Origin: Macrostomum lignano
Lineage: Eukaryota
NCBI GenBank assembly: GCA_002269645.1
Contig: NIVC01000368.1
Coordinates: forward strand, 62,001 to 126,000
Direction: 5' to 3'
Length of the DNA: 64,000 bases
A program made the translations under genes and the position numbers. Positions 28,391 to 59,743 of the stretch are shown in pieces (the first letter of the stretch is position 1; each line of letters opens with the position of its first letter). The notes under the pieces are model-generated. The model had not been told where the DNA came from, searched no databases, and saw only the letters and a list, made by a program, of their open reading frames with translations.

Positions 28391-32646
<4,256 letters not shown>

Positions 32647-33500: not shown

Positions 33501-33596
33501 ATTCTCACAGGAACAGTTGGGGTGGTTCTCAAGAAAAAGTGCGCATTAAAGACAGAAATACGCAAAAAAAGAATGGCAGAAGACTTGAGCAACAAT

Positions 33597-36224: not shown

Positions 36225-36304
36225 TACGCCTGGCTGGTACTGATGTATATTCGCAAGAGCTGAAATTGAGTGTAGTTATTTTCGAAATAATAAAACTGCT
36301 GATA

Positions 36305-36680
36305 AGAGCGAGTGTTCATTGGGGTGGCTGAGGGGTAAGGGAAGAGCGAGTGTTCATTGGGGTGGCTGAGGGTAAGGGAAGAGCGAGTGTACATTGGGGT
36401 GGCTGAGGGGTAAGGGAAGAGCGAGTGTACATTTGGATTCTTAAGCGGTAAGGGAAGAGCGAGTGTACATTGGAGTGGCTGAGGGGTAAGGGAAGAGTAA
36501 GTGTACATTAGAATTGCTAAGGGGTAAGGGAAGAGCGAGTGTACATTTAGATTGTTATTAAGGGGTAAGGGAAGAGCGAGTGTACATTAGGATTGCTAAG
36601 GGGTAAGGGATGAGCAAGTGTACATTTAGATTGTTATTAAGGGGTAAGGAAAGAGCGAGTGTACATTTAGGTTCGCTGAG
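36305..36680. repeat. About 37-bp minisatellite (GGGGTAAGGGAAGAGCGAGTGTACATTGG) upstream of ZNF277
   Basis: About 9 copies. Confidence 0.88.
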
Positions 36681-37516
36681 AGTTAAGGTTGGTTCTAAAA
36701 AGCAGTTAGTTAAAATGATTTGACAAATGCAAATCAAGTTTTATTAATTATCAACCTGCTCTGGCACAGCAGCTTTAAGCGGAAATATGTATTTATAATA
36801 TGTATATTATTTTCGCTTCATCCACAACAATAATTAGCAATATAGAAATTAGTGATGCTTTATACATAATGTATGCACTTCTCTAATGACTGAGAGCTAA
36901 AAAAACTTAGAGAGTGGACAATAAAATTAACCATTCATTAATTGGCATGCACACAATTGTAAATAAATTCAACAGTTATATAAAAATAAATAGAAAAATA
37001 GTTCAAATTGAATAAAATAATTGGCATGCAATATTATAAATTCAATTAATTTTGACGAAGTAATTGGGATTTAAAAGCCTATTTTAAGCAGTAAAAATTG
37101 GCGGTCATACAAAAGCAATAGGGGAATTATTTAATAAGGATATTTACACGCCTCATGCAATTTCTAATTTTCAAAATAAATTAGAAAAATTCAACGATTG
37201 TAAATAAGAAAAATGCTCACATAGGAAAAATAGAGACAAACTAATGGCAGAAGCGATGTTATTTGGCAAAAAAAAATAATTATAAATAGGCGAAAAAGGT
37301 CTGTAAACAGGCTAAACTGAACCAATTGAGAATGCATTTTGATTTTGTGCTGCGGCAGAGGCTTCTGGTGAGTAAAAATGATGTGCATAATACTAGTAGT
37401 TACAGCAGCACGGAGCCGCAAGCTGACAAGATATATTTGTAAGAATAAATGAATTACATTGACTTCTTAATGTCCAACAATTCTTGTTAGTTTGTACAGT
37501 TGACTTAAGTTTAATA

Positions 37517-37547
37517 GACAGACAGACAGACAGACACAGAGACTAAA

Positions 37548-37590
<43 letters not shown>

Positions 37591-37591
37591 T

Positions 37592-37662
<71 letters not shown>

Positions 37663-37689
37663 GGAAGGCAGACAGAAAGACATACAGAC

Positions 37690-37720
<31 letters not shown>

Positions 37721-37765
37721 TACATACAGACAGACAGACAGACAGACAGACATACAGACAGACAT

Positions 37766-37800
<35 letters not shown>

Positions 37801-37801
37801 T

Positions 37802-37875
<74 letters not shown>

Positions 37876-37877
37876 CC

Positions 37878-37921
<44 letters not shown>

Positions 37922-37923
37922 CC

Positions 37924-38016
<93 letters not shown>

Positions 38017-38190
38017 GGAAGGCAGACAGAAAGACATACAGACAGAGACAGACAGACAGACAGACAGACATACATACATACAGACAGACAGACAGACAGA
38101 CAGACATACAGACAGACATACAGACAGACAGACAGACAGACATACAGACAGACAGACAGACAGACAGACAGACCCAGACAGACAGACACA
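37517..38190. repeat. (GACA)n microsatellite right after the CIP2A stop
   Basis: Seen directly. Confidence 0.95.
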
Positions 38191-38202
38191 GTCAGTCAGC
38201 GC

Positions 38203-41200
38203 CTAAGACTTAAACACAGCAGAGGCGGACATGAGGATATTCTTCAGCTGGTTATTCCTCTCGGCCATCTCCAGCTTCTCCCGCTCGGTCTGGTCCAGCA
38301 GGGCCTGCAGTCGCTCAGCATTCCGCTGAGCAGACTTCACCTCTTTCACCAGTCTGGCCTCATTTGCCGCTTTCTCGCGTTCAAGCACGCGCAGCGCCTC
38401 TTGCGCTTTTTCGGCGTCAGCCGTAGCGCCGCGTAGTTTGGCGCATTCCGCCTCCAGAGCGGCCGAGCGCTGAGCTTGGCGCCTAGCAACCGCTTGACAA
38501 CGGGACAGTGCGTCGGATTGAGCGGCGGCGTAGGCAATTAAAGATTCTTCGCTGAGTTGACAGGCTTGCAGCTTGGATTCGTACAGTGTGAGCAGGTCTG
38601 AGACTCGCGTGTCCTTCAGCTGTGCAAAAGTTTTTGTTAGAGGGAGGGGGTGGTTATGAATGCAAATGAAATGCTGGCGTCCTTAAAGTACCATTGATGA
38701 TTTTAAGAGTCTTCGGCGACAATGTCCCACAACTAGCTGGTACAGATGAAAGCAGTCAGGATGCTTACTGAGGACTCAGGGTGGTCACTGAAGAGACTCA
38801 GGGGAGTCACTCAAGAGACTCAGGGTGGTCACTGAAGAGACTCAGGGGAGTCACTCAAGAGACTCAGGGTGGTCACTGAAGAGACTCAGAGTGGTCATTC
38901 AGAGACTCAGGGTGGTCACTGAAGAGACTCAGGGTGGTCACTCAGAGACTCAGGGTGGTCACTCAGAGACTCAGGGTGGTCACTGAAGAGACTCAGGGTG
39001 GTCACTCAGAGACTCGGAGTGGTCACTGAAGAGACTCAGGGTGGTCATTCAGAGACTCAGGGTGGTCACTCAGAGACTCAGGGTGGTCACTCAGAGACTC
39101 AGGGCGGTCACTCAGAGACTCAGGGTGGTCACTCAGAGACTCAGGGTGGTCACTGAAGAGACTCAGAGTGGTCACTCAAGAGACTCAGAGTGGTCACTGA
39201 AGAGACTCAGAGTGGTCACTCAGAGACTCAGAGTGGTCACTCAGGGACTCAGGGTGGTCACTCAGAGACTCGGAGTGGTCACTGAAGAGACTCAGGGTGG
39301 TCATTCAGAGACTCAGGGTGGTCATTCAGAGACTCAGAGTGGTCACTCAGAGACTCAGGGTAGTCACTCAGAGACTCAGGGTGGTCACTCAGAGACTCAG
39401 AGTGGTCACTGAAGAGACTCAGGGTGGTCATTCAGAGACTCAGGGTGGTCATTCAGAGACTCAGAGTGGTCATTCAGAGACTCAGGGTGGTCACTCAGAG
39501 ACTCAGGGTGGTCACTCAAGAGACTCAGGGTGGTCACTCAAGACTCAGAGTGGTCACTGAAGACTCAGAGTGGTCACTGAAGACTCAGGGTGGTCACTGA
39601 AGACTCAGGGTGGTCACTGAAGAGACTCAGGGTGGTCACTCAAGAGACTCAAAATGGTCACTGAAGACTCAGGGTGGTCACTGAAGAGACTCAGGGTGGT
39701 CACTCAAGAGACTCAGGGTGGTCACTCAGAGACTCAAAATGGTCACTGAAGACTCAGGGTGGTCACTCAGAGACTCAGGGTGGTCACTCAAGAGACTCAG
39801 GGTGGTCACTGAAGAGACTCAGGGTGGTCACTCAAGAGACTCAGGGTGGTCACTGAAGACTCAGAGTGGTCACTGAAGACTCAGGGTGGTCACTCAAGAG
39901 ACTTAGGGTGGTCACTCAGAGACTCAGGGTGGTCACTCAAGAGACTCAGGGTGGTCACTCAGAGACTCAGGGTGGTCACTGAAGACTCAGGGTGGTCACT
40001 CAGGGACTCAGGGTGGTCACTGAAGACTCAGGGTGGTCACTCAGAGACTCAGGGTGGTCACTCAGAGACTCAGGGTGGTCACTCAAGAGACTCAGGGTGG
40101 TCACTCAGAGACTCAGAGTGGTCACTCAGAGACTCAGGGTGGTCACTCAGAGACTTAGGGTGGTCACTCAGAGACTTAGGGTGGTCACTTAGAGACTTAG
40201 GGTGGTCACTCAGAGACTCAGGGTGGTCACTCAGAGACTCAGGGTGGTCACTCAGAGACTCAGGGTGGTCACTCAAGAGACTCAGGGTGGTCACTCAGAG
40301 ACTCAGGGTGGTCACTCATAGACTCAGGGTCGTCTCTCAGAGACTTAGGGTGGTCACTCAGAGACTTAGGGTGGTCACTTAGAGACTTAGGGTGGTCACT
40401 CAGAGACTTAGGGTGGTCACTCAGAGACTTAGGGTGGTCACTTAGAGACTCAGGGTGGTCACTCAGACTTAGGGTGGTCACTCAGAGACTTAGGGTGGTC
40501 ACTCAGAGACTCAGGGTGGTCACTCAGAGACTCAGGGTGGTCACTTAGATACTCAGGGTGGTCACTCAGAGACTCAGGGTGGTCACTTAGAGACTCAGGG
40601 TGGTCACTCAGAGACTTAGGGTGGTCACTCAGAGACTTAGGGTGGTCACTCAGAGACTTAGGGTGGTCACTCAGAGACTTAGGGTGGTCACTCAGAGACT
40701 TAGGGTGGTCACTCAGAGACTTAGGGTGGTCACTCTTGGACGACTATTTTACGGTCTGCTATTCACGTGATGCGCTCGTGGTCAACAGTCGCCTCTCCGT
40801 CGCATCAGTCTAACGAGTCGTTAAAAAGATAAAAGAGTCGCCCAGGGTCACTACTTGAGGCAATTCGTCCCATTTCACTGACCCCTGAGCACATACCTGA
40901 GTTGCAATGAAAAAGAAACAGATTAGATAAAGCACTCACATTCAGCCTGTTTTTAACATCGTTAATCAGCTGATCCAGCTGACCGCTGCCCAGCTCGTGT
41001 CCACCGTTGACTGCACCGCCGCCGCCACCGCTGCTGCCGGCAGATGCAGACGTTGAAGTTGTCGAACCAACCGCGACACCGTGGCCGTTTATCAGTTCAA
41101 CGCCGAGACCGATGCTACCCGCATAGCAACCGTTGCTAGGCAACGCTGAAGGGCCGCTAGCGATACTATTATTGGCTGAGGCTAAAGCCAAGCGATGACG

Positions 41201-44200
41201 CTGAGACAATAGTGAGGCGAGTTCGCGGGAAACGCTGCAAACCAAGACAGTGGAAACAAAGACTATAAAGGTGACACTGCTGAACTTCTGTACCACAGAC
41301 CCTTCTGAAATTCTAATCTATCAATTAAGTTACATTTTTATTCGATTCCTCTTGATCCCTACTCAATCAGTGACACTTTAATCCCAAACACAATGATCCC
41401 TAATCCCTCAGTCGGCGACACTTTGATCCCAAACAAAATCCCTAATGCCTCAGTCGGCGACACTTTGATCCCAAACAAAATCCCTAATGCCTCAGTCGGC
41501 GACACTTTGATCCCAAACAAAATCCCTAATGCCTCAGTCGGCGACACTTTGATCCCAAACACAATCCCTAATGCCTCAGTCGGCGACACTTTGATCCCAA
41601 ACAAAATCCCTAATGCCTCAGTCGGCGACACTTTGATCCCAAACAAAATCCCTAATGCCTCAGTCGGCGACACTTTGATCCCAAACACAATCCCTAATGC
41701 CTCAGTCGGCGACACTTTGATCCCAAACAAAATCCCTAATGCCTCAGTCGGCGACACTTTGATCCCAAACACAATCCCTAATGCCTCAGTCGGCGACACT
41801 TTGATCCCAAACAAAATCCCTAATGCCTCAGTCGGCGACACTTTGATCCCAAACAAAATCCCTAATGCCTCAGTCGGCGACACTTTGATCCCAAACAAAA
41901 TCCCTAATCCCTCAGCCGGCGACACTTTGATCCCAAACAAAATCCCTAATGCCTCAGTCGGCGACACTTTGATCCCAAACACCCAAATGACACCTAAAAT
42001 TGAAATGATATATAAACACAGTTCATACTACTCACCTGGGTATAAGCTTCTGCCCAGCCAGGCACACTATACGAAGGGCACATTCCACAATCTGATCCCC
42101 GCAATAGTCGGACACGGCTGCGCCAGAGCCACCATTGCTGGCATTGCTATATGGTCCCCCAGAATAGCAATGATAGACGAGACCGCAAGCTAGTAGGCGA
42201 GCCAGGGAACACGATGTCGAAGATTGCTTTCGATGTTCGCCGTTACTACTAGTCTCAGTAGTATCAGTAGAAAGTCTAGCTTCAATCTGATTGGCTAAAG
42301 GCTTGTTACTATTGACGCCAAAATTGCTAATCCGGCACAATAGCCACAGCAAACGGATGCTGCACACTTGGCCAAAGTAGATCCAAGAGCGCCTGCGATA
42401 ATCTTGCGATCGTCCCACATAGCAGCACTTGCTCGCTAGCCAATCAAGTAGGTCGAGGCAGCGTTCAGTTACCAGCTGGCGACCAATCAGATCGCACCAT
42501 TGCGGCTGGTTGCACAGGTCTGCGGAATTGCACGATAATGGCGATCTGGGATTCTGGGAGAATGCTAGCTAATGGAGATTCTGGGAGAATGCTAGCTAAT
42601 GGGGATTCTGGGAGAATGCTAGCTAATGGGGATCTGGGAGAAATGTAGCTAGTGGGGATCTGGGAGAATTGTAGCTCATGGGGATCTGGGAGAACTGTAG
42701 CTAATGGGGATCTGGGAGAATTGTAACTCATGGGGATCTGGGAGAATTGTAGCTCATGGGAATCTGGGAGAATTGTAGCTAATGGGGATCTGGGAGAACT
42801 GTAGCTAATGGGGATCTGGGAGAACTGTAGCTAATGGGGATCTGGGAGAACTGTAGCTAATGGGGATCTGGGAGAATTGTAACTCATGGGGATCTGGGAG
42901 AATTGTAGCTCATGGGAATCTGGGAGAATTGTAGCTAATGGGGATCTGGGAGAACTGTAGCTAATGGGGATCTGGGAGAACTGTAGCTAATGGGGATCTG
43001 GGAGAACTGTAGCTAATGGGGATCTGGGAGAATTGTAACTCATGGGGATCTGGGAGAATTGTAGCTCATGGGAATCTGGGAGAATTGTAGCTAATGGGGA
43101 TCTGGGAGAACTGTAGCTAATGGGGATCTGGGAGAACTGTAGCTAATGGGGATCTGGGAGAACTGTAGCTAATGGGGATCTGGGAGAATTGTAACTCATG
43201 GGGATCTGGGAGAATTGTAGCTCATGGGAATCTGAGAGAATTGTAGCTAATGGGGATCTGGGAGAACTGTAGCTAATGGGGATCTGGGAGAACTGTAGCT
43301 AATGGGGATCTGGGAGATTGGGGTAGCTAATGGGGATCTGGGAGAATTGACACTTGAAAAAGCATTCTTACAGCCCAGCAGTTTGCAATAAGCGCCCAGC
43401 CGAACAACATTACGCTCGAAAGCTTCTGTAACGTGCTGATTAAACTGCAGACTATCCACGCTAAGCTGTGGCAACAGATAGTTGAGCACTAGTTCGAGTC
43501 TGTGCTTAGACTGGCACTGGGAATCCACATAATGCTTATATAGATCAGTTAACAGACGGACAGCTTTCACAGCGGAATCGCAGGAGTCTTGAGCGGCAGA
43601 CAGAATGGCTACGAAAGCTAAATTGCTATTCTTTAATTTGGCATCAGTGGTGTCGCTTTGCAGTGCTGAGTTTAATAGGATCTGATCGAATACTAACTTG
43701 CGACTGCGCTCGTGGTTGCATAGTACATGAAGTACTTCCAGGATCTGGTCAAAGGGGAAAGGATTATAGCGGTATCAAATTCTACTGAGAGTTTAGAAAC
43801 TGGGTGTATTAACAAAGGATAAAGCAGTTAAGGGATCTAGGAAATCAAGACCTAGGAAGAGAATGGGATTTGGGAAGCGAATGGGATTTGGGAAGATAAT
43901 GGGATCTGGGAAGCGAATGGGATATGGGAAGAGAATGGAATCTGGAAAGAGAATGGGATTCGGGAAGATAATGGGATCTGGGAAGAGAATGGGATTTGGG
44001 AGGAGAATGGGATTAGGGAAGAGAATGGGATTTGGGAGGAGAATGGGATTAGGGAAGAGAATGGGATTCGGGAAGAGAATGAGGTTTGGGAAGAGAATGG
44101 GATTCGGGAGGAGAATGGGATTAGGGAAGAGAATGGGATTTGGGAGGAGAATGGGATTAGGGAAGAGAATGGGATTCGGGAAGAGAATGGGGTTTGGGAA

Positions 44201-47200
44201 GAGAATGGGATTCGGGAGGAGAATGGGATTAGGGAAGAGAATGGGATTTGGGAGGAGAATGGGATTAGGGAAGAGAATGGGATTCGGGAAGAGAATAGGG
44301 TTTGGGAAGAGAATGGGATTCGGGAGGAGAATGGGATCTGGGAAGAGAATGGGATTTGGGAAGAGAATTGGATTAGGGAAGAGAATGGGATTTGGGAGGA
44401 GAATGGGATTAGGGAAGAGAATGGGATTCGGGAAGAGAATGGGGTTTGGGAAGAGAATGGGATTCGGGAGGAGAATGGGATCTGGGAAAATATTAGGATC
44501 TATGAAGAGATAGAATGGGATTTGGGAAGAGAGATAGAATGGGATTTGGGAAGAGAATGGAATCTAGGAAGATAATGGGATCTGGGAAGGTAAGGGGATC
44601 TGAGAAGGTAAGGGGATCTGAGAAGGTAATGGGTTCTGGGAAGAGAATGGGGTCTGGGAATTGAGAATGGGATCTGGGAGAATGGGAGTTAAGAAGAGAC
44701 AAGGATATGTGTGTAGAGGCAACTGGATGTCAGACGACACAGGGACAAACATTTCACTCACTTTGCCTTGAAGCAGCTTCTCCGCTGTCAGCTGATCCAA
44801 CAGCGGTCCCAAGCAGACTGGCAAATACTCATAAGTAGGCAACAAGTCCTGATTGAAGCCAGAAGTGGCAATATCAATAAGCAAATTAGCGGAATACAAT
44901 GGCGCCCATCTACTATTGCAACTGCCAGTCAGTAGTACGTGAAACACAGCTTGAATGCTCTGATAGGAATTGGTTGGACAGTTAAACAGCTGTTCACCAC
45001 ATCCACCAAGATAGTAGATTAGCGACATTGAATAAATAGTAATGCTTAATGACGGATTCTCCAAATTTTTCAATAGCTGCTTTTTTAGCCAGTGAAACTT
45101 GTCAGAATTGCGAACCAAATTCTGGCAGTCGGTATTGCCGCGAAGCAGAGAAGCGAGAATGCCAAGCGATGGTTCGTAGATTGCCATGTCCGAGTCGTTT
45201 CTGGGGAAGTTAAAATCATAAATAAATAAATGTCTATGATTGCTGTTCACGACACGCCCTGAATTCACTACTTAATTAATAGATTCAGTAATTAGTCGGT
45301 GTAATTTTTAAGCATATTATGTTTGTTAAACCCTGAAAATAGCTTTAATTAGGGTATTTTACAAAACTGTTTATAATAATTTGTGATATCAAGCCCTTCT
45401 TGAATCATGTGGATTACTAAACTTTCATCCTTTAAGTTTTACTAAATTACGAACCCTCCCTGAAGCTTTCTTAGACTACTAACCCCTCCCTGAAGTTTTA
45501 TCAGGCTACTAATCCCTCCCTGAAGTTTTATCAAGCTACTAACCCCTCCCTGAAGTTTTATCAAGCTAATAACTATTCTCTGAAGTTTTATCAAGCTACT
45601 AACCCCTCCCTGAAGTTTTATCAGGCTAATAACTATTCTCTGAAGTTTTATCAGGCTACTAACCCCTCCCTGAAGTTTTATCAGGCTAATAACTATTCTC
45701 TGAAGTTTTATCAAGCTACTAACCCCTCCCTGAAGTTTTATCAAGCTAATAACTATTCTCTGAAGTTTTATCAAGCTACTAACCCCTCCCTGAAGTTTTA
45801 TCAGGCTAATAGCTATTCTCTGAAGTTTTATCAAGCTACTAACCCCTCCCTGAAGTTTTATCAGGCTAATAACTATTCTCTGAAGTTTTATCAAGCTACT
45901 AACCCCTCCCTGAAGTTTTATCAGGCTAATAACTATTCTCTGAAGTTTTATCAGGCTACAAACCCCTACCTGAAGTTTTATCAAGCTAATAACTATTCTT
46001 TGAAGTTTTATCAGGCTACAAACCCCTACCTGAAGTTTTATCAAGCTAATAACTATTCTCTGAAGTTTTATCAAGCTACTAACCTTTCCCTGAAGTTTTA
46101 TCAGGCTAATAACTATTCTCTGAAGTTTTATCAGGCTAATAACTATTCTCTGAAGTTTTATCAGGCTAATAACTATACTCTGAAGTTTTATCAGGCTACT
46201 AACCCCTCCCTGAAGTTTTATCAGGCTACTAATCCCTCCCTGAAGTTTTATCAGGCTACTAACCCCTCCCTGAAGTTTTATCAGGCTAATAACTATTCTC
46301 TGAAGTTTTATCAGGCTACTAACCCCTCCCTGAAGTTTTATCAAGCTACTAATTCCTCCCTGAAGTTTTATCAAGCTACTAACCCCTCCCTGAAGTTTTA
46401 TCAGGCTAATAACCATTCTCTGAAGTTTTATCAGGCTACAAACCCCTACCTGAAGTTTTATCAGGCTACAAAACCCCACTTTGCTGTTTTATCATACTAC
46501 AAACCCCTCCCTGAAGTTTTTAGGCTACCCACCCCTCCCTGAAGCTATATTACAAGCCTACCTGAGATAGAACAGCAGCACGGAAACCACGGAGGCAACT
46601 GCCGCAGCCCTGTCACCGTCAGTCCAAGCGCCAAAATGATAATCAAAGCAGAGCGCCTGCAGCAAGCACAGGCCGTCAGTCAGCAACGGATGCGATGGAC
46701 GCTGGTGAAAGAACACTGGCAGACGATCTAAGCAGCTGTGCGATTCCAGCAGCGTCTCCTGCCACGCTCGACTACTTGCTGAAAATTTATGAGGAATGGG
46801 CAATAAATGTCTGTTATCATAAATCTCTTTTCGAATCACATAAATCCCTATTAAAATTTCATAAATCCCTATTATATTCACAGAAATTTCAATCAGAATC
46901 TCAAATAACTAAATTAGAATCGCATAAATACCAATTAGAAACTCATAAAATCCCAATTAGAAACTCAAAAATCTCGATTAGCATGATCTCATAAATCCCT
47001 ATTAGAATTCCATGAATCCCAATTAGAAACTCAAAAATCTCAATTAGCATGATCTCATGAATCCCTATTAGAATTCCATGAATCCCAATTAGAAACTCAA
47101 ATCTCAATTAGAATATCATAAATCTGAATTAGAATTTCATAAATCCGAATTAGAATCTCATTAAACTACCAATTAGAATTCCATGAATCCCAATTAGAAA

Positions 47201-48423
47201 CTCAAATCTCAATTAGAATATCATAAATCCAAATTAGAATTTCATAAATCCGAATTAGAATCTCATTAAACTACCAATTAGAATTTCATAAATCCGAATT
47301 AGAATCTCAAAAAAGCCCAATTATAATTTCATAAAAATCCCAATTAGAATCTATAAATTCGAATTAGAATCTCATAAAAATCTCTTGAATTAGAATCTCA
47401 TAAATCTAAGTTAAAATCTTATAATAAATCCCTTTAATAATATCATATAGATAACTATTTGAATCCGAAATCCCAATTATAATCTTAGTAGTCTTAAATA
47501 GAAACACGTAAGTTTTATCTAACGTAACTGAACTGAACTCACCCAGGTGGGTCAGTAGCTTTACGCATCTGCGCCGAACAGAGTGCGACACTCCGCTCCG
47601 CCCGGTGACAAGCAATTCCAGCAGCGCTTCCAGACAATCGCGAGTCACGACGGACTCCAGCTCCAGTTGTGACGGGTGCAGACCCAAGAAATGCTGAATT
47701 GTTGTGGAATTCAATAAATATAGATCAATATATCAATCAATATAAGCTATACAAGTGCCAAGGGAAGAAGGGAATAGGAACTGGGAAAAGAAAGAAAGGA
47801 ATCTGGGAAGAGTCTGGAATCCAAAAAAGAATGAGATCTGAGAAGAAATGGGATCTAGAAAGAGACTGGAATCTGAGAGTGAGAAGAGAGAATTTTGTAT
47901 GAGGTCTAGGAAGAGAATGGGATCTGGGAAGAGAATGGGATCTGGGAAGAGAATGGGATCTGGGAAGAGAATGGGATCTGGGAAGAGAATGGGATATGGG
48001 AAGAGAATGGGATCTAGGAAGAGAATGCAATCTGAGAAGAGAATGGGATCTGGGAAGATAATGGGATCTGGGAAGAGAATGCGATCGGGGAAGAGAATGG
48101 GATATGGGAAGAGAATGCAATCTGAGAAGAGAATGGGATCTGGGAAGAGAATGGGATCTGGGAAGAGAATGGGACCTGGGAACAGACTAGGATGTGGGAA
48201 TAAGATTTGCAAAAAGAAATGGGATCTAGGGATTCATATCTAAGAGGCATATCAGTTGACATTTGGCAAATGCAATTGAGGAGACAATTGGGTCTAGTAA
48301 ACAAAGACTTACATCAATTCGATGGGACAGCACCAGCTCATTGTTGCTGGCGCCACTGTCTTGCTGCTTACCACTACAACCAAGGTAGTGGTCAATTTCT
48401 GTCAGCAGGGATGAAAAGTCTGC
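38203..48423 (-). CDS. CIP2A: CIP2A (cancerous inhibitor of PP2A, KIAA1524) orthologue; 8 exons, about 835 aa; no genomic ATG in the first coding exon
   Basis: Exons 48423-48313, 47693-47543, 46778-46562, 45200-44762, 43744-43354, 42519-42036, 41234-40940, 38619-38203, all phases consistent (2505 nt). Armadillo-like motifs (EPSLGILASLL, SLSITIYSMSL, GEQLF, YSANLLIDI, YEYLPVCL, KILEVLHVLC) and QLDQLINDV-K...RVSDLLTLYESKL coiled coil match recalled CIP2A. Confidence 0.85.
38770..40737. repeat. 21-23-bp minisatellite (GAGACTCAGGGTGGTCACTCA)n in CIP2A intron 7
   Basis: About 90 copies. Confidence 0.95.
41365..41980. repeat. 42-bp minisatellite in CIP2A intron 6
   Basis: ATCCCTAATGCCTCAGTCGGCGACACTTTGATCCCAAACAAA, about 14 copies. 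Confidence 0.95.
42545..43348. repeat. About 27-bp minisatellite in CIP2A intron 5
   Basis: GGGGATCTGGGAGAACTGTAGCTAAT units with higher-order periodicity. Confidence 0.93.
43855..44690. repeat. 18-bp minisatellite (GGGAAGAGAATGGGATTT)n in CIP2A intron 4
   Basis: Period 18. Confidence 0.93.
45455..46550. repeat. 30-bp minisatellite (CTGAAGTTTTATCAGGCTACTAACCCCTCC)n in CIP2A intron 3
   Basis: Period 30, two variants. Confidence 0.95.
46820..47410. repeat. Degenerate minisatellite (CATAAATCCCAATTAGAA) in CIP2A intron 2
   Basis: Units of about 20 bp. Confidence 0.82.
47790..48230. repeat. 18-bp minisatellite (GGGAAGAGAATGGGATCT)n in CIP2A intron 1, same family as 43855-44690
   Basis: Period 18. 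Confidence 0.92.
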
Positions 48424-49949
48424 CTGGAAGTTAATTTAACTATAGCTTTAAAATCCAACCACTTTGTTCAATGCAATCATTACTCCTAGATATGTACTCT
48501 GATCAAAGCTAATGTATCAGAACCAGAGTCCAAAGAAATACTATGAAAATAATTTTTTTAAATATTGATACATACATTTTTTGCTTAATTTTCACCAAAA
48601 TGTAATGGTTAACACTTTCAGATTTTCAAGAGCCTAGAGAATTATATATACTGAAATTTTAAACAATTTTCTATCAAATAAACTACCAAGATAGCTTATG
48701 TAGATAGCAATAGTATTACATTAAATATAAACTTAATATTTGAGAAAAACTGAAATGAATGAATTGTAATAGAAAGTTTTATATTCTTTTAATGTTTTAC
48801 TGAAATCCAATAAAATTTTTTACTTAGTAACATCTATTAGAATTTAAAAAATAGGCTTTGTTTTATGATATCTTTGAAACTAGCCTAAAAAGTTAAATTT
48901 AAAGTTAGGCCTGGACAAGATTACAATATCAAAGTATTAAATTAATAGGTTTATTATTAATTAAATTGGTAAATAGATCCTAACCCTATTTCTATGATTT
49001 AGAATAAGAAGTTCAAGTCTAAGATCCTAACAAAAAGTAGAAGGCCAGTCTTATCTAATTCTAAAAAAATTGAATTTAAACACTAGAATTTAGATATTAT
49101 TATATATATGCACTAATATATTTTTTTGTAATTTCAATTAAGTTATATAGATTTATAGCTTGTTGACTAATAATATAGAAATAGGAATATTATCTTATTT
49201 TATGCGAGAATTCAATTTTGCCACTTTGGCAACTATTTATTTTGATTCAGCCAAATTGGTTTATAAACAATGGCAGCACCTCACAGGTGCCACAGCAAAG
49301 GGCTTAGCACTTCTAATTAGGTCCCTAAGGGGGAGGGGGTGGTTAAATGGTCAATCCTTTCTCCTAGCATTGTTAAAAATTAAAATAGGCCTTAGCCTTA
49401 GCATAGCACATTATACTCAAATTTCATAAAAATCATTGCATATAACAATCTTAATTCTTGTATTGTATTAAAACATTATGGTAGATCACCCTATCAAAGA
49501 ATAGGAAGATATTCCCTTAGCCTATTCATTACCAAAAAGAGATGGGGATAAGAGCCTAGGATGGTAATCATCTAGATCTAGGTCTTAGACTTTTAGCCCT
49601 TGTCATTTTGTCAATTGGCATTTTATAAACAGGCTATTTTGTCAACTCTCTTCTTACATTGTTGTTGTTTTAACTAGGCCTAGCCAATAAATAAAGCAGT
49701 CTCAAACATTGGTCACTTTGTCAACTGGCTAATGAGGACATACATGCGCAACAGTCGGCCGAGTCGGCCGATCCGGCCGACCGATTTGGCGGCCAACCAA
49801 GTAAGTCGCAAAATTGATTAACCGCCAAAAAAAACGAAAAAACAAAAGACGAAAAAGGGGAAAGGAAAAGGAAAAAACGAAAAAAAAGGGAGCAAAGAGA
49901 AAGAGAAAAACACAAAAAGAGTTGTAAGTGCTGTAAGTTGCAGCACTGA

Positions 49950-50860
49950 AGACAAGGTAAGTCGCACCGAGGGCGAGCTAAGTCGCACCGAGGGCAAGCT
50001 AAGTCGCAGCAGGACCGAGCTAAGTCGCATCGAGGGCGAGCTAAGTCGCACCGAGGGCAAAATAAGTCGCACCGAGCGAGAGCTAAGTCGCACTAAGTCG
50101 CAGCAGGACCGAGCTAAGTCGCACCGAGGGCGAGCTAAGTCGCAGCAGGACCGAGCTAAGTCGCACCGAGGGCGAACTAAGTCGCACCGAGCGAGAGCTA
50201 AGTCGCACTAAGTCGCAGCAGGACCAAGCTAAGTCGCACCGAGGGCGAGCTAAGTTGCAGCAGGACCGAGCTAAGTCGCACCGAGGGCGAACTAAGTCGC
50301 ACCGAGCGAGAGCTAAGTCGCACTGAGGGCGAGCTATGTCGCAGCAGGACCGAGCTAAGTCGCACTAAGGGCGAGCTAAGTCGCACCGAGGGCAAAATAA
50401 GTCGCACCGAGCGAGAGCTAAGTCGCAGTAAGTCGCAGCAGGACCGAGCTAAGTCGCACCGAGGGCGAGCTAAGTCGCAGCAGGACCGAGCTAAGTCGCA
50501 CCGAGGGCGAACTAAGTCGCACCGAGCGAGAGCTAAGTCGCACTAAGTCGCAGCAGGACCGAGCTAAGTCGCACCGAGGGCGAGCTAAGTCGCACCGAGC
50601 GAGAGCTAAGTCGCACCGAGGGCGAGCTAAGTCGCAGCAGGACCGAGCTAAGTCGCATCGAGGGCGAACTAAGTCGCACCGAGCGAGAGCTAAGTCGCAC
50701 TAAGTTGCAGCAGGACCGAGCTAAGTCGCACCGAGGGCGAGCTAAGTCGCACCGAGCAAGAGCTAAGTCGCACTGAGGGCGAGCTAAGTCGCAGCAGGAC
50801 CGAGTAAGTCGCAGCAGGGCCGAGGTAAGTCGCAGCAGGACTGAGTTAAGTCGCAGAGCA
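49950..50860. repeat. Subterminal tandem array of TAAGTCGCA motifs (putative transposase-binding sites)
   Basis: Dozens of CTAAGTCGCA(CCGAG/GCAGGACCGAG) units. The same motif recurs near the other TIR (about 56020-56060). Confidence 0.85.
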
Positions 50861-51205
50861 TCTTTAGGATTATTAGGATAGGATTAGTTTAGGATGAATT
50901 TAATGTATCACTTACTAGGGTGTAGGCTACGTGTGCATTAACGCATCAATTTGAAAAATTAAGAATTACGAAGCCAGAAATGGCTAAGGAATAGAAATAG
51001 GGATAGAATAACTTATAAGCAGTAATTTTTCAGCCCTATTACAATTGCAAATCATACTTTTAATAATATTTAATTAGCAAATTAAAACTGCAAGATTCTA
51101 ACGGTCTTATATATGAACTTAGAAGAACTGTAGTCTTAATGATTATGCATGTACCATTGTAATAATTGATTAAAATTGTAGCAAATTAAAACTGATAAAA
51201 AACTT

Positions 51206-54200
51206 TCAAAATAGTCCACTTAGCAAATCAGAATCAGAATCTTTAATTTCCTCGTCTACGTTGGATTCTTTTTGCCGTTGACCTCCAGGAGCATCAGAAC
51301 GCCAGTGTTTTTTCAGCCAATCATTGACATAAATATCTGGCTTAAATTTCATCAGCGGAGGCCCATTTATTCGAATCCGTAGTAGATGCTCCAATGTTTT
51401 TGGTGCCAAGCGTGTTCTCCTGTCATAGGCAATGTGCTTATAGATAGAAAACCCTCTTTCAGCCTCAGCTGATGATATTGGCAAAGTTAACACAACCATA
51501 ATTAGATTCTTTATTCTGGGCAGCCATTCAACAGTTCTTGTCTCTAGAAAGTGATAGAAAGTGACTCCAAAATTTCACCGGACCTTTGCCTTTGTAGGCA
51601 CAGAAGTCAACACTATGCGAAGTGATCAAACTTTTTAGGAGTAGACCGAACTGACCAGAGATTGTCCTTTCTGTAGCGCGTTCTGAAGCATCTGCATCTC
51701 TAGAGTCTGAATCAGAAAGATGGTCCTCTGTTTCAGATTCAGAGCTGTCATCTTCCATTCCAAACCGTCTAGCAAGAGGTATGATTCTCGAACTGTATGT
51801 AAAGACAGTATGTAATGTTTCAGCATTAGGCAATAACACTGGGTTGAGCACATTAAATATTGAGTAGTCATCCTCAGGAAAATAATTACGCAGCTGATCA
51901 ATTATGCTATCAATGATTCGACTGCGAATCTCATCCAGTGCTGGATAAGCTCCCATGTCAACAACACTGCCACGTCCACTAGCATCAAATAATCTATTTC
52001 TTAGAGATCTGTCTGCAGCAGAACCTGGTTGCTTCAACTCAAACCTCTCTGTTGGATCGCTGCTTCCAGGGCCAGAAGGACAAGCAAAGTTAGAATAAGA
52101 TAGGTCTCTTGTGTGACATCCTGAATGGTATTCCAGCTGCGGATATCCATCTGCAGTTCCCAAAACTCGACGACACTTGCAGGAAGCCAAAAAGTCCACA
52201 ATGCGAGGACCATTGTTCGTTTTTAAGGTTTCTAGTGAATGGATAAGGTTAGTGTGGCGTTCTTGCAAGCCAATAAATGTACCCTTGGCTCTTTGAAACT
52301 GCAAGGACTCAAATTCCAGTAATTTTAGAATGTCCATGAGAAATAGATGTAATGAATAATACCGGACATTTTGCAATGTTTTCAATAATCCAGAGGCAGT
52401 TGCTTTACTTTCGTCATCAAAGCCTGAGGAAGGTGATTTGATATTTTCTAAATTTGTCAGAAGCAAGTAGTACGACTTTCGAATCACATCAAGAGCAGAC
52501 ACTTCCGATGCAACCCACCTGATGCGATATATTCTTTTTAATTCATAGAAAACCAAGTTGAGTGCTTCCGAAGTTTGTGCCAAAGATGCCTTACCTTTAA
52601 CAGTGTGGCTCATATAAAATTTGTGTAGAGAATTTATATTCTTATCGAGATGTTGCATAAATGGGAAGATTTCAAAGGCATGATAGATTGAAAGTTCTAA
52701 CTTATGCGCTGCACAATGGTGCTGAAAAAATTGTTTGCTAGCCCAAGGCCTCAGTTGACTTATTAATCCCACTCGACTTCCTGTCATTACGGATGCACCA
52801 TCAGTTGTCACCCCCCATAGCCTTCGTTTGATTTCATCTTCTAGCTTGTCATCCGAAAATAAACGGATGAGAAGTTCATAAATGCTTCGTCCAGTCTCTA
52901 CTTCAGTCAGACGTTTAAACCGATAAAAAAACATCAAAGGTTGGCTGTTTTCAAGAACTCTGAAGTATGTCATGACGTAGCTGTTTGAATGAATATCAGA
53001 CGTTGTATCTAGTACAATAGAAATCGGAAGATTGTCAGCACTTTTAATGTAATTCACAAATGTCCGATGCATTGTATTACTGATTGATTCCACCATTGCT
53101 GCGGCACTTTTGCGATGCTTATGATGGCTCCCCATATCCAACCCATTTTTTACTTGTAAATCAATCATATTTGGATGAGCACTGAATGGAATATTAGATT
53201 TGACTTCGGCATAAACTGTTGTCAAAACTCGGGCTGTTATTTCATCTCGTTTAGTTTTAGCTAGTCTAGCGGCCTCATTCATCTGTTTGAGTTGCTTTGC
53301 AAGAACTGAAGTATGTTTTTCCTTCATCCACTTTATGGCGTCACTGTAAAGTGTATTTGATGAATGTTCCTATAGTTTTCTTCGTACGCTATCTTTTGCA
53401 TGACCTTTGGGAATGTAGCCTTGTTCTGTTGCAAAAGTTAACTTACGTTGGCTCTCTAGATTTGTCTCCTTTTTCTTATGTGCATTCAAAAATTTTCTGC
53501 AGATCCGACATTGTATTCCAGATCTTGATAGATCTTCGGTGTTTTGAACATATTGAAACCATGTCTTCATTTCTTGTGACACAAATTTTCTTGAAAATGA
53601 TCTGCAATGGTCAAATTAGAGAATATTTTGGGATTTGGACTATTTGTGAGTATCTAAAAGCAATATGCTAATAAGTGCAATACACAGTACACTATACATT
53701 AATTTACAGTTCGTCAGTTTCCATTTACTTACTGTGACTGGTGCATCTCCAAAGAATGTAACCACTCCTCTCAAAAACCAGATGTATCCTCCCAGTCCTT
53801 TTTAGGGAAAACTTCAATATTTTCGCCCATCATAGAGGAAGACGAGGGCTTTGATGCTGAAGTGGCTAGACATGCGTCTGCAGATGTGCTTATGCATGGT
53901 ATTTTTCTTTGCGATGGCCCTGCTTCTGCAGTATTTACTTGTACTATTTCAACATCACCTGAACCCCTTGAGTCGCTCGAATCTAAATCAACAATAGGAC
54001 TTTGGCAAAGTGATCGTTTCGTTGATTGTCTTTGAATATTTACTTGCCTAATAATTTCCACTTGTAGTTTGCTTGTTTGCTGGTCATTCTCCAACAACTC
54101 TCTTCTTTCCTGTACATTTGCAGCAGAGCAAAAATTAGAAGTTTCTGCAGCAGCAGTTTGAACAGCATGATCTCGATTAGCTGCTATTTGCTCTGAAAAT

Positions 54201-55360
54201 TCATAGGACCTGGCCAATTCACTACGGTGTGAGCTTTCAGAACATGGAGCTGGAGCAAGAGCTAGTCGCATTTCGATTCTTTCTGTTGCTGATGAAGCAG
54301 ATGCTAATGCTGAGTCTGCCAATGTACCTGCTTCTCTTGAAGGTGTATTTATGATGGCTTCAATATTGTCCTCTAAAATCCAATGAGCACCTGAGCAGTC
54401 ATTTTCTCTACCTGGAGTCAACTGTCCAAGTTTCCACCTTGTAAAAAGCAAAGGCTTTCGTAACTCACTGCCGGATTCAGGGCACCGGTTTATTGAATAG
54501 TCCTCATGACCAAGTTCATCCCATTCTCTTGCTGGCTTTAAGATGTAGTTGGGCTTGTCTCTTAGCCTACGATAAATGGACTCAAAAAATGTGCACCTGT
54601 TATTTTGCGTACTTCGTGCATAGATGATCATGTAATGCACATTGTTCCTAATAATTTCAGCTAATGAGTTATCAATGATAATTTTATCTTCATAAACAGG
54701 TCTTCTTTGTGTTGCATGCATTTTAGCTAGTTGCAGTTTTCCAATGCTACTGGCAGTTGTGGAACTTGAACTGTCCGATTCTGATCTAGAAAAGTCTCGT
54801 TGATACAAGAGAATAATGGCCATAGCACTTTTACCATTCCCATTCTTTAATGCATTTGGTTCTGTTGGAATTGTCTTACTAGCAGACTTGAAAAAATCAA
54901 TGATGGATGACTGCGATGATCCACTAGGAGCGGAACTTGGCAGCCCATGTCTAGTTTTTCCCTGATACCCAATAGATGTATCGGTAAAAAACATATCTGC
55001 TGCTTCCTGCTTCTCTTTTGATGCAATAACAAAGAAACTGCTGTCCGTTTTGAAGCCCGAGGACCGATAGAAGTCAGCAGAAAATGAAACCACAGGTCGT
55101 CTAAAATTGCCGCTATATTCTTGAACTCCAATCAGAAGAAAATCACGGAGTCTCACTGGCACTGATCCTAATAGCATTGCAGTTGTGGAACAAACTTTCT
55201 TCAGCTCAATGAACTCTGAAAATTCTTGAGATCCAATATTAGGCTCATCAGTATTTAACTCATTTATAACAATTGAGCACTCACTCTCAGCTAGAATACC
55301 ATTGATAGCTAGGATGCCACTTAGAATCAGTAGGCAAAGACAACTAAGGCTGTACATCAT
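51206..55360 (-). pseudogene. Signal peptide + LTD-like domain + TTF-type Zn finger + hAT DDE transposase fusion (about 1337 aa reconstructed), disrupted in this copy
   Basis: Exons 55360-53733 and 53601-51206 joined by a 131-nt GT-AG phase-2 intron. Transposase motifs SIVLDTTSD, GVTTDGASVMTG, HCAAH, IRWV, LPISSAEAERGFS. Lesions: TGA at 53773-53771, TAG at 53372-53370, 10-bp duplication at 51545-51564. Confidence 0.82.
53771..55360 (-). CDS. Intact 529-aa ORF: predicted secreted lamin-tail-domain-like protein (N-terminal part of the transposon gene)
   Basis: MMYSLSCLCLLILSGILAINGILA signal-peptide-like segment; IVINELN...EFIEL and YSINRCP...TPGRENDC motifs; paired cysteines. Acceptor CAG 1 nt before the ATG, with a 5'UTR intron at 55362-55455. 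Confidence 0.7.
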   Translation of the reverse strand: MMYSLSCLCLLILSGILAINGILAESECSIVINELNTDEPNIGSQEFSEFIELKKVCSTTAMLLGSVPVRLRDFLLIGVQEYSGNFRRPVVSFSADFYRSSGFKTDSSFFVIASKEKQEAADMFFTDTSIGYQGKTRHGLPSSAPSGSSQSSIIDFFKSASKTIPTEPNALKNGNGKSAMAIILLYQRDFSRSESDSSSSTTASSIGKLQLAKMHATQRRPVYEDKIIIDNSLAEIIRNNVHYMIIYARSTQNNRCTFFESIYRRLRDKPNYILKPAREWDELGHEDYSINRCPESGSELRKPLLFTRWKLGQLTPGRENDCSGAHWILEDNIEAIINTPSREAGTLADSALASASSATERIEMRLALAPAPCSESSHRSELARSYEFSEQIAANRDHAVQTAAAETSNFCSAANVQERRELLENDQQTSKLQVEIIRQVNIQRQSTKRSLCQSPIVDLDSSDSRGSGDVEIVQVNTAEAGPSQRKIPCISTSADACLATSASKPSSSSMMGENIEVFPKKDWEDTSGF

Positions 55361-57713
55361 TCTGTGAAAGATTAAGTCGAGTATATGATTTTGGTGATAA
55401 AATAAAATTGATTTATGAGTATTACTATATAAATAAAACATTTAAAAGCCCTTACCTTTACCAATTCATGTACAGAAAGTAAGTGTAAATACAACCAATT
55501 GCCTTGGTAGTTTAGTTATATGCTCGTATCAGATGCAGGCAGACAGCATAGGCTGCCAAGGTGCTATAAGTTAAGGTTAACTTTCACTATTTGGCTTTAC
55601 AGACTGCTTTTATCGCTGCATGCATTGGCTTAGCCTTAGCTTGTGCCATCATACTCATACAGCTATATATACATATGTATCTCTGCCACTCCCCACTTTT
55701 GCAACCTTACACTGTACAATCATGCCTAAAACACTCCGTGTCAAGTGTACTGTTCTAGTGCCACATGGGGTACAAATACGATTAGGAATGACAAGAGTCA
55801 AAACCATACATGCACAATAGTTGGCCGATATGGACGACTGATTTGGCGGCCAACCAAGGTAAGTTGCAAAAATGCCCACCCAAATAAATACCAAAGTAGT
55901 ATTAAGTAGCTGACGAAGCATTTTGCCTTAATAAAGACAGTCATATTTACTCCTGCCGTTTACCCAAAGTTGCGTTAATTTTGCTTTCAGGTTTTTTTCA
56001 TGTAAGTCGCATTTTTGGCCGAAAACTACGTCGCATTTTTGTTAAAACTAAGTCGCACGGCCGACCAAATTTTGGAGGTTGCGCATGTATGAATGAGGAG
56101 TAGGCTTACTCCAACCAACATTGGTCACTTCATCAACTGCCAATTTATTACCCATTGTGACTGCAAAAAAACTAAAAGGTAACTGGTCGTTTGGCCCATC
56201 AACATTTTGGCCATGGACATTTCACCCCCAGACCATTTCACCTATTAACTATTTTGGCCATGGACCATTTTGCCTACAATTTGCCTCCAACTGACCAACC
56301 ATTTACTTTTATACTTTATCACAATTTTACACTTTGTGCTTTGATTTTCAATTTTGGTGACAAATCTTATTTGTTTAGTATTTTTGGCTTTATCTTGCTT
56401 GTAACTGTGAAAGTGAAACCCTTTCTCACCCCTGGAGTTTGATTATACAAATTGGCTTTAATTGGATTGCACTTTTGAAAGGAATAACTTTAAAAAAACT
56501 TATAATAGGCCTAATTTACAATTGTAATAAACAAAATCGCAATAACGTAATAACACAATTGTTGTAGCAACAATTTATAGCATTTTTATTACACATTAAA
56601 ATTAAAAATTAGCATTGAAAACAAAGAAAATAAAGATACATGTATGGTTGTATCTCTAGTTAATACATAGGCCTAGGCCTAATCATTATTTTGGCCAAAG
56701 CAGTAAGCACCCATTGATTGCCAAACTGGTTTATGAGCAAAACAGACTATGGGAAAAATGGTCCGGGGGCAAAATGTCAATGGCCTGTGGCTGAAATAGT
56801 TTAGGCTAAATTAGGGGCGAAACAACCAGAATTCAACTAAAACTAGGCCTAAATCCTAAAGGCTGAAATGAAATGACTATTGACTAGGTATACTAATTAT
56901 TATAAATACCCTTCTGCACAACATCTGCCAGCAGCCAGCTTTGATTGATGTGTCTCTGACTAGCCTATATTAACAAACTATAGACCTAATGTCAATGACA
57001 AATGCACTCATGTGTTTGAAATGAATGCAGCAGGATAGGGATATCCCGTGTTACACATTTCTTGTCAAATTTTTGGATGTATAAATTCATTTATAATTAG
57101 GCCTAAGGAGTAGGCCTAGTTGATGAGCACTGGACCAAAGATATGATGCTTGAAATGGCACTAGTGGTAGTGCCCCTACGGCCTACTAGGCTATTAAAAT
57201 TTAAAAGGAGCTATTACATTACACTTACAGTATTAATAGGGCATATTAGGAAAACTAATCGTAAAAAACATAAGAAAACAACGGTTCAAACCAAAAAATG
57301 TTGACTGCCGACTCAAGTCTCACTCTTAGTAAGTAGCATGACAGTTAGGTCCGAGTTAGCAAAAATGGCACAACAGCACAGCACAATCCGCGGCCGCTGG
57401 TAAAAAAATAATAGAAAACGTCGTAGAAACTAGTCCTGATTTACCGTAAAAAAACTACCCTGTAAAACAAATATTTTTGTTTTATTTACTTTAAGTGTAT
57501 TTAAAACTATATTTTGTATACAAAAATAAAAAACACAAATTAATTTACACTTTAGTTATTTCTATACTGATTTTGTACTGTCGTAAAAGCGTTGTGCAAA
57601 TTTCAAATTTTACTTTTTCTAAGAAGCAAGTTTTCGTTTTCGGCTTAGGATTCGTGCTTATTCCACCGATGTCTTGAATTTTAAATTTAATACCAAAATA
57701 TACTTGATGTACT

Positions 57714-59743
57714 ATGTTTACCTTAACTATTTCAATTCCTAAATCTTCACGACACTCGAACCCAAATGAAGTCAGTTGGGAACTTGTGCATTCGTACTTC
57801 TCAGATCTTTTTTCGGAAGAATTTTTGTGTGTTGTCAAGCCTTTCAATGGGGACCACACATTGGCAAAATTGTATTTCAAGAACAAAGGTAAGTAATTCT
57901 GTTAATATTAACACTATTCCTCGGTGCTATGGTAATATCATTTTTGCAAACTTTAAGTAAGAATGCAATGAAGTAGTACTACTACTGACTTGCGATGCTA
58001 GCTACAATTTCAAATAGGAGGGCTAAGTTAAGTAGGCTAGCTAGATAGGAGCTCACACTCCAGAGTCTGGATCATGTGGTATACGCTCGAAAATTTGGGC
58101 ATGCATTGACCTTGCATGCAAAAAGTAGGCGTGCACAGCTGGCGTGCATCACAACTAAGAAAATAGTGTTCATGCACACCTGGTATGGTATGCACTTTAT
58201 AGAATAGAAATACAACCTTCTTGCACAATCATTGGCTTACAACTTTTAACTATACATGTTCAAGCTTGCGGTGCAGCATACAAAAGCATTGAAGTATGTC
58301 ATAATTATGTAAATTATGCAAAACAATTTTTGCTGTAATAAAATTAATTTTAAAGTTATGACAATAAATAAATTTATTTAAGATATATACTTGAAGTTTC
58401 TATAGTTACTAGTAAAAATACTAAAAACAATAGTATACATAACTATTTTGTTTTACTAATTGTTTCTATTTTTTAATTAATTTAGGTTTTGTTTTTTGCA
58501 GCAATTATTTGCTGTGTATCTATTGCTAGAGACTCCGGCGAGCTCCGAGTAGCGTGGTTGAAACTAGAAAAAACGTACATTTAGCACCTACTTCAAACAG
58601 AAAACTAAGATAGAAAAAATATGACTGTGTAAAAACTGAAATACACAATAAAAAGCACAATAAATGTACTTCAAAATGAGTGCTCAAACAGCTTCTAAAG
58701 TCGATCAGAGACAAAGTTATGGACAGTTAAAGTTTCATCATTTTTGCATTCCCATGCAAAATGAAGCCTATTTTACGGTAAAAATCGTGACTTTGGAAAG
58801 TCTAATTTTTAATAACGAAATGACCGTTTTAAACAAAAATAATCAATATAAAAGCAATCTAGGCATAATTAAGTATCATTTTATGTAAATTTCAGAAGAA
58901 AAAAATATTCCCTGTTGCCTACAGGGGTAGTCCAAATTTTTTTCTTCGATTTCTTTGTATCATCCGATTGCTGCACGGAATTCAAATGTAAATTTCTTTA
59001 TTCTTTGTTGCAAGTGGAAGGACATGCAGAAAACCGTTTGGGATTACCTAGTCGCGCATTGCTACTAAGTTGATTCAAAGATCATAGTAAAATCAAAGTA
59101 AATGTCTATTTAAAATATATTTTTTATTTTTTTTGAGAAAAAAAGAGACGCACAAATACAGTTGATATTGACTTTCATACATAATTGCATGACAAGTGTG
59201 AGGAATGAAAGTTCCTTCTGACAACTGACCGCGCACTTAGAAATATGAGCATCAATATGTTTCAGCGAGATTCAGGTAAACGGCAGGAGTAACTATGACT
59301 TTCAGTGCAAATGCAATTGCATCGTCACCTTATTAGTAGGAAAAATGAACATTTTTAAACTGTATTTTGTAAGTTAATTGCACTATGAAGTCAATACACA
59401 CTGTCTTGAAATTCATTTCCATGATAACCATTACAACTGCTGTCTTCAAGATGTGTACTCTTCTATTCTATGTACACATTGTACATGGGGGTCATATGAG
59501 AGGCTTCCGTTGGAAAGCTGCTGGATATCAGACCCCAGCATAGTGATCCCAACAAGCGACCCCTGGCATTCGTCTGGTCAACGATGCAAACTCTCAAAAA
59601 TGTATGGTATGTATGGTACAGAGTACCGTGGAACTGTTGCAATAGGTTTATGCCTGTGCAATAAAAGCAGGTAGGTGATTTTTTATATGGCATTGAAAAG
59701 CAGCCATTTTGTTTGAATGTCTTCTGACTTATGCAGCTACTGA
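57714..59743 (+). CDS. Possible small spliced gene (about 134 aa, RRM-like pattern), convergent with the second transposase
   Basis: Exons 57714-57888 (donor G|GTAAGT), 59451-59670 (donor AG|GTAGG) and 59737-59743; phases 1 and 2 match. No recognised homologue. Confidence 0.3.

Follow-up and report, generated by a model that had tools for sequence, protein, structure and literature searches.

A CIP2A gene of Macrostomum lignano lacks a genomic start codon and probably takes its initiator AUG from the trans-spliced leader

The window analyzed here, 64,000 nucleotides (nt) of contig NIVC01000368.1 from the free-living macrostomorphan flatworm Macrostomum lignano (assembly Mlig_3_7, GCA_002269645.1; window position x is contig position x+62000), carries on its minus strand a copy of CIP2A, a conserved cell-cycle and genome-stability gene. 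As far as the DNA can tell, no start codon of this copy lies in the genome, and the initiator AUG is probably donated by the spliced leader (SL) that is joined to the transcript in trans. This reading is supported by a first coding exon that opens in phase 0 directly behind a splice acceptor, by an annotated 5′ end at the same base, and by what is most likely an imprint of SL-joined reads at the corresponding junction of a second gene copy.

The CIP2A gene and its 5′ end

The window copy (copy 1) corresponds to GenBank PAA84545.1 ("hypothetical protein BOX15_Mlig002101g10, partial"; 828 residues), and the 30.2-kb locus fetched around that entry is contained exactly in the window (58423..28203, minus strand). 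Mapping the residues of PAA84545.1 back onto the DNA placed the gene at 48423..38203 on the minus strand, as eight exons and 828 codons with neither a frameshift nor an internal stop. In a sensitive protein search, PAA84545.1 was 100% identical to the spliced model over residues 1-430. All seven introns are of the GT-AG type and 619-2320 nt long, six of them with a GT[A/G]AG donor. The coding features and those around the 5′ end are as follows.

48424..49738, minus strand: upstream flank, ~94% identical to copy 2 (see below); presumed outron and proximal promoter
48448..48480, minus strand: short in-frame upstream open reading frame (ORF) of 10 codons (MIALNKVVGF*), with its ATG at 48480; in the presumed outron
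48436..48438, minus strand: in-frame TAA that closes the frame five codons upstream of exon 1
48424..48430, minus strand: predicted trans-splice (3′) acceptor cTTCCAG, with its AG at 48425-48424; fits the published motif [T/C]TNCAG
48313..48423, minus strand: exon 1, 111 nt, 37 codons (ADFSSLL...HRID; ADFSSLLTEIDHYLGCSGKQQDSGASNNELVLSHRID), phase 0 at both ends, GTAAGT donor
47543..47693, minus strand: exon 2, exact mapping of PAA84545.1
46562..46778, minus strand: exon 3, exact mapping of PAA84545.1
44762..45200, minus strand: exon 4, by mapping; contains the first in-frame ATG (codon 165, NDSDMAIY) and covers Pfam CIP2A_N profile positions 139-270
43372..43744, minus strand: exon 5, mapping of PAA84545.1
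42036..42519, minus strand: exon 6, mapping of PAA84545.1
40940..41234, minus strand: exon 7, mapping of PAA84545.1
38203..38619, minus strand: exon 8, C-terminal coiled-coil region (judged by eye); TAG stop at 38205-38203

By its sequence, the gene is CIP2A. The Pfam family CIP2A_N (PF21044) scored 63.2 bits against a cutoff of 26.3 (E 2.4e-17), with protein residues 51-418 aligned to profile positions 31-393, and the human CIP2A structure 5UFL (5UFL_A) matched at E 2.2e-17, with query residues 50-418 aligned to human residues 49-412. The best non-self matches, from a starfish, Nematostella, a nemertean, an annelid, a snail, a lamprey, and a trematode, are named "protein CIP2A homolog". The tail encoded by exon 8 is heptad-like and rich in E, K, R, and A; by eye, DQLINDVKNRLNLKDTRVSDLLTLYESKL resembles the human IEELIEKLQ...ISDIMDVYEMKL. 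The predicted protein shares with animal CIP2A (human KIAA1524, PDB 5UFL) an N-terminal ARM-like domain (E ~1e-17) and a colinear N terminus, and by eye its C-terminal region is coiled-coil-like; it differs from the human protein in its length (829 vs 905 residues), in sequence (~25% identity), in an N terminus shorter by ~3 residues, and in a start codon that is not encoded in the genome. CIP2A/KIAA1524 was not found in the Macrostomum literature and supplements that were searched.

Across the 5′ junction, the minus strand reads ...gttaaattaacttccAG/GCA GAC TTT TCA TCC CTG CTG... (a slash marks splice junctions here and below). Between the TAA at 48438-48436 and exon 1 lie four sense codons (INFQ) and no ATG, and a second in-frame TAA is found at 48450-48448. 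Exon 1 itself contains no in-frame ATG; the spliced coding sequence (CDS) first reaches one at codon 165, inside the conserved ARM domain. A first-pass annotation of this DNA had described the TTCCAG acceptor, the phase-0 opening GCA GAC TTT TCA, and the upstream stop within five codons, had concluded that CIP2A lacks a genomic start codon, and had aligned its first residues with the start of animal CIP2A; the sequence bears out each of these points. In the alignments, query residue 50 falls on human residue 49 and query residue 51 on Pfam profile position 31. Orthologue N termini (MESTACLKSLLLSISQY, MDTASSLKSLLLAINQY, and similar) resemble [M]ADFSSLLTEIDHY, with the SLL..I..Y motif lined up by eye. 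Since the M. lignano N terminus matches those of the orthologues and is only ~3 residues shorter, nothing substantial should be missing upstream, the methionine alone being absent. By alignment, exon 1 is the true N terminus of CIP2A.

Evidence for a probable donation of the initiator AUG by the spliced leader

To our knowledge, every reported flatworm SL ends in AUG. M. lignano has a single 35-nt SL, CGGTCTCTTACTGCGAAGACTCAATTTATTGCATG, which ends in ATG (PMC8629364), and 30-39% of its genes are trans-spliced, with an enriched trans-acceptor motif [T/C]TNCAG (PMC8629364, PMC5730564). Trans-splicing is enriched among conserved and stem-cell genes of this species (PMC8629364), and the final ATG of the Macrostomum SL was called a translation start codon in the genome paper on M. 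cliftonense and M. hystrix (PMC10468722). As represented in PMC9851317 and PMC12582326, Cheng 2006 established that the 3′-terminal AUG of a flatworm SL can serve as an initiator. In these accounts, the SL AUG of Schistosoma mansoni is in frame in 28% of trans-spliced mRNAs and is needed by more than 40 cDNAs. The first-pass annotation had named both the AUG-ending leaders and their use as initiators, and had proposed that trans-splicing at the CIP2A acceptor yields MADFSSLL; the M. lignano SL and the Schistosoma precedent agree with the general part of that proposal, and the specific part gains support from the annotated 5′ end, the SL imprint in copy 2, and the retention of the acceptor in copy 3, all described below. 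Neither an Rfam scan nor a search for the SL allowing up to three mismatches detected an SL RNA gene or a copy of the SL in the window; the SL therefore has no cis source here, and exon 1 is not an assembly chimera that contains the SL.

The acceptor is singled out by its reading frame. Four AG dinucleotides lie around the junction, and with the SL AUG attached only the one at 48425-24 leaves the frame open (MADFSSLL); at the other three, the SL AUG frame reaches a stop within 4 to 31 codons. Joined in frame, ATG/GCA GAC TTT... stays open through 828 codons. The GenBank CDSs of copy 1 and copy 2 (PAA93250.1) are both 5′-partial and begin with the first base after the acceptor (48423 in the window). 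The annotation pipeline of Mlig_3_7, TBONE, divides transcripts where SL-trimmed reads pile up into peaks (PMC5730564), and a boundary at exactly this base is what such cutting would produce. Because the CDS includes neither INFQ nor codons of another exon, the transcript does not appear to extend 5′ in unspliced form. No phase-0 ATG followed by a GT[A/G]AG donor was found within 5.4 kb upstream of exon 1 in the window, and no same-strand host gene lies close enough upstream to suggest an operon (Pfam searches of the upstream ORFs gave one match, a hAT transposase dimerization domain).

Comparison with two further gene copies provided a second, unplanned line of evidence. Copy 2 (PAA93250.1, contig NIVC01000031.1, locus L002) is full-length; copy 3 (PAA84525.1, contig NIVC01000369.1, locus L003) is divergent, being ~82-85% identical in the flanks, and still conserves the TTCCAG/GCAGAC junction, which indicates that the acceptor is ancestral. 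The junction reads aacTTCCAG/GCAGAC in copy 1, aaaTTCCAG/GCAGAC in copy 3, and aaaTGCATG/GCAGAC in copy 2. The hexamer TGCATG is the last 6 nt of the SL and differs from TTCCAG at three positions (-5, -3, and -2); in copy 2 it lies at L002 9995-10000 (NIVC01000031.1:423140-423145), homologous to window 48429-48424. A similar replacement was found at the 5′ end of a neighboring zinc-finger gene, which reads caatTTCAG/CT in copies 1 and 2 and caatGCATG/CT in copy 3 (TGCATG at L003 23237-23242, NIVC01000369.1:192723-192728, homologous to window 36265-36260). The three loci contain 40 TGCATG sites, and 36 cross-copy comparisons were informative; they revealed six single-base polymorphisms and two multi-base differences, and the latter are precisely the CIP2A site in copy 2 and the zinc-finger acceptor in copy 3, both of them annotated 5′ ends. 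TGCATG is no more frequent in the window than the background predicts (30 sites in the 128 kb of both strands vs ~31 expected). The Mlig_3_7 assembly was polished by Pilon with RNA-seq reads (PMC5730564), and SL-bearing reads that overhang the acceptor by a few bases appear in this step to have overwritten TTCCAG. The TGCATG of copy 2 is therefore most likely a polishing artifact, an imprint of SL-joined reads at the CIP2A junction.

Under the proposed mechanism, the window copy of CIP2A would be transcribed with an outron, which SL trans-splicing at TTCCAG (AG 48425-48424) would remove, and with it the short upstream ORF at 48448..48480. The 35-nt SL would be joined in phase 0 to GCA GAC, so that the mature mRNA would begin cggtctcttactgcgaagactcaatttattgcAUG/GCAGACUUU..., with a predicted junction of SL and exon 1 of ...TTATTGCATG/GCAGACTTTTCATCC. 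Translation would then start at the terminal AUG of the SL and yield a protein of 829 residues, MADFSSLL..., with the predicted N terminus M/ADFSSLLTEIDHYLGCSGK. That ribosomes start at the SL AUG is what we infer from the lack of an in-frame AUG before codon 165, the colinear N terminus, and the precedent of Cheng 2006 as related in later papers. It is likewise presumed that SL reads derive from the window copy as well as, or instead of, copy 2.

Several observations weigh against this proposal. The acceptor hexamer alone is no evidence, as it occurs at chance frequency (YTNCAG 379 times in the window vs 361 +/- 19 expected); what goes beyond chance is that the acceptor has this position and phase, is conserved among the paralogues, and coincides with the annotated 5′ end. 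Support at the RNA level is indirect, consisting of the annotation boundary and the polishing imprint, and exon 1 is 100% identical in copies 1 and 2, which leaves SL reads unassignable to the window copy. The context of the SL AUG (uugcAUGG) has a G at +4 and a T at -3, the latter not optimal. Roughly 35% of the donors in M. lignano do not fit GT[A/G]AG (PMC8629364), which makes an unrecognized upstream exon conceivable. Copy 3 is annotated with a cis-spliced upstream mini-exon joined to this acceptor.

Other possible origins of the start codon

A cis-spliced upstream exon with an in-frame ATG might start the window copy, instead of or in alternation with the SL. The annotated product of copy 3 begins MLADFSS..., from a 6-nt coding mini-exon, ATGCTG/GTATGT, ~600 nt upstream and spliced to the TTCCAG acceptor, which would then apparently be usable in cis as well; in parasitic flatworms, cis- and trans-splicing share acceptors extensively (PMC12582326). 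The 5.4 kb upstream in the window offer 118 phase-0 combinations of an ATG with a following GT, none of which has a GT[A/G]AG donor, compared with six of the seven CIP2A introns. The copy-3 mini-exon is embedded in ~5.2 kb of copy-3-specific DNA to which nothing in the window or in copy 2 is homologous, and neither of these contains the string ATGCTGGTA; with no counterpart there, the mini-exon was rejected as a model for the window copy. The GenBank CDSs of copies 1 and 2, moreover, are 5′-partial at the acceptor and are not extended into any upstream exon. A cis-spliced start in place of the leader is on this evidence unlikely, although it may coexist as a minor isoform. In copy 3 itself, the mini-exon (L003 10001-10006) may be an alternative first exon that arose from an insertion, or else an artifact of annotation; the copy-specific DNA around it (L003 5138-10382) contains no long ORFs.

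The three copies could also truly differ in how they start, copy 1 using the SL AUG, copy 2 a genomic ATG from a copied-back SL tail, and copy 3 its cis-spliced mini-exon. The SL tail would then have come from a processed mRNA and the mini-exon from the copy-specific inserted DNA. This three-way reading is regarded as quite improbable. If it were true, a single genome would display evolutionary interconversion between start codons donated by the SL and start codons encoded in the DNA.

A related possibility, and a very improbable one, takes the TGCATG of copy 2 as genuine and the window copy as a start-less, possibly nonfunctional duplicate of a functional copy 2. The deposited assembly does read ATG/GCAGAC in copy 2, and strain DV1 of M. 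lignano has large recent duplications (PMC5730564, PMC10468722). Three clustered changes would, however, have to yield exactly the SL tail while the adjoining 111-nt exon 1 remained identical between the copies, and a like conversion is present at the acceptor of an unrelated gene in another copy of an assembly that was polished with RNA-seq reads. The ancestral state of TTCCAG, kept in the divergent copy 3, also runs contrary to a genuine TGCATG. The GenBank CDS of copy 2 begins after this ATG and not at it, which indicates that the boundary came from SL reads. The window copy, for its part, does not look like a dead duplicate; its eight exons and 828 codons are intact, with no frameshift or stop.

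If no AUG were donated at all, translation could begin inside the protein at Met165, or in exon 1 at a near-cognate codon (the CUGs of SLL, for example), and the product would be truncated or initiated without an AUG. Exon 1 has in-frame CTG codons, and the UniProt/WormBase model A0A1I8GSB4 begins at Met165. Such a start would forfeit 164 residues that align with the conserved N-terminal ARM domain of CIP2A and whose codons are open and nearly identical across the three copies, when the SL offers a perfectly placed AUG; it is considered highly improbable.

Least credible, to the point of being rejected, is a start at ATG 48480 through a micro-intron of 36 or 39 nt (donor GTTGGA or GTGGTT; product MIALNK(V)ADFSS...): this ATG is in frame, 57 nt upstream of exon 1, and followed by two phase-0 GT dinucleotides, but neither donor has GT[A/G]AG, the real introns measure 619-2320 nt, a 2-nt indel puts the homologous ATG out of frame in copy 3 (59 nt), and the GenBank model does not use a start that would add six to seven residues to an N terminus already matching the orthologues in length.

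Relation to known systems and neighboring sequences

Donation of the initiator AUG by the SL has been established in flatworms since 2006 and was already hinted at for Macrostomum; the mechanism is not new. What this case would add is an instance from a free-living macrostomorphan, in a conserved gene of the cell cycle and of genome stability. On sequence features, CIP2A would belong to the class of SL-AUG-initiated mRNAs described in Schistosoma (Cheng, Cohen, Ndegwa & Davis 2006; the "slORFs" of PMC9851317). It resembles them in an SL ending in AUG, an acceptor in phase 0, the lack of another usable AUG, and homology to orthologues that begins at the splice junction; it differs in that the published work concerns S. 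mansoni, whereas the case in CIP2A of free-living M. lignano is known from sequence. With the SL trans-spliced genes of M. lignano (Wudarski 2017, PMC5730564; Ustyantsev & Berezikov 2021, PMC8629364), it shares the single 35-nt SL, the [T/C]TNCAG acceptor, and the Mlig_3_7 transcript boundary placed at the acceptor. Those two studies do not analyze ORFs that depend on the SL AUG, and GenBank merely labels the CIP2A CDS "partial".

A donated AUG would explain that label for PAA84545.1 and PAA93250.1, the protein being complete once the SL AUG is added, and it would also explain two faulty older models. One, A0A1I8GSB4 (P0028), an older WormBase/UniProt model, begins MAIYEPSL, that is, at Met165; the other, A0A1I8FH03 (P0001), is a scrambled model that mixes reading frames, begins in exon 2, has no contig on record, and was the only entry matched by a word-based protein search. 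The pair carry the misnomers "DDT domain-containing" and "DUF2428 domain-containing", and both models probably went wrong because the genomic ATG is missing. Gene finders that need a genomic ATG would systematically misannotate flatworm genes of this class. A conserved factor in proliferation and genome stability would, moreover, depend for its expression entirely on trans-splicing, which fits the reported over-representation of conserved and stem-cell genes among those that are trans-spliced (PMC8629364).

The apparent imprints also have a bearing on the assembly. Two Mlig_3_7 acceptors, TTCCAG and TTTCAG, are each replaced by TGCATG in one copy, which could bias acceptor-motif statistics; if widespread, such overwriting could account for the presence of [T/C]TNCAG at just 44% of the trans-splice sites annotated in M. 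lignano (PMC8629364). A search for imprints of the SL tail could also help to locate trans-splice sites.

The introns and 3′ flank of CIP2A are full of minisatellites (47750-48200, 43800-44700, 42470-43350, 41360-42030, 38780-40750, and 37470-38200), among them an 18-nt unit, CCCATTCTCTTCCCAGAT, present in introns 1 and 4. The units each hold an acceptor-like CCCAG or TTCCCAG, which amounts to dozens of decoy acceptors within the CIP2A introns. Upstream of the gene, window ~49738-56092 is a ~6.3-kb insertion relative to copy 2, with tandem repeats at ~49.7-50.9 kb, a hAT-family transposase ORF at 51209-53369 (Dimer_Tnp_hAT, 4.8e-8), and a 556-residue ORF at 53774-55441 with no Pfam match.

The 5′ end annotated for the neighboring zinc-finger gene (zf-C2H2_2; site at 36259-36224, minus strand) likewise falls at an acceptor, aatttcAG/CTCTTGCG, with its AG at 36261-36260. 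In contrast to CIP2A, joining at this acceptor would put the SL AUG in another frame than the gene, where it would open a 12-codon upstream ORF (MLLRIYISTSQA*), whose stop would overlap the genomic start ATG (TAATG, MANKVLCLF...).

A gene with a J domain (DnaJ) has its first coding exon at 27021-26701 on the minus strand, and no ATG precedes the J domain in frame. There, a C-rich tract has a phase-0 CAG CAG at its end and is followed by an Arg-rich, presequence-like segment, QLCRRGPHCC...RRQSSSSPYDVLGVD. The GenBank CDS of this gene in copy 2 is 5′-partial and does not start at an AG; the gene may be a second one that depends on the SL AUG. Elsewhere in the window, a retroelement-like ORF of 1253 residues (1605-5363, minus strand; ~59% GC) and several long GC-rich ORFs at 59.9-63.8 kb, the latter with no Pfam match, are probably transposable elements.

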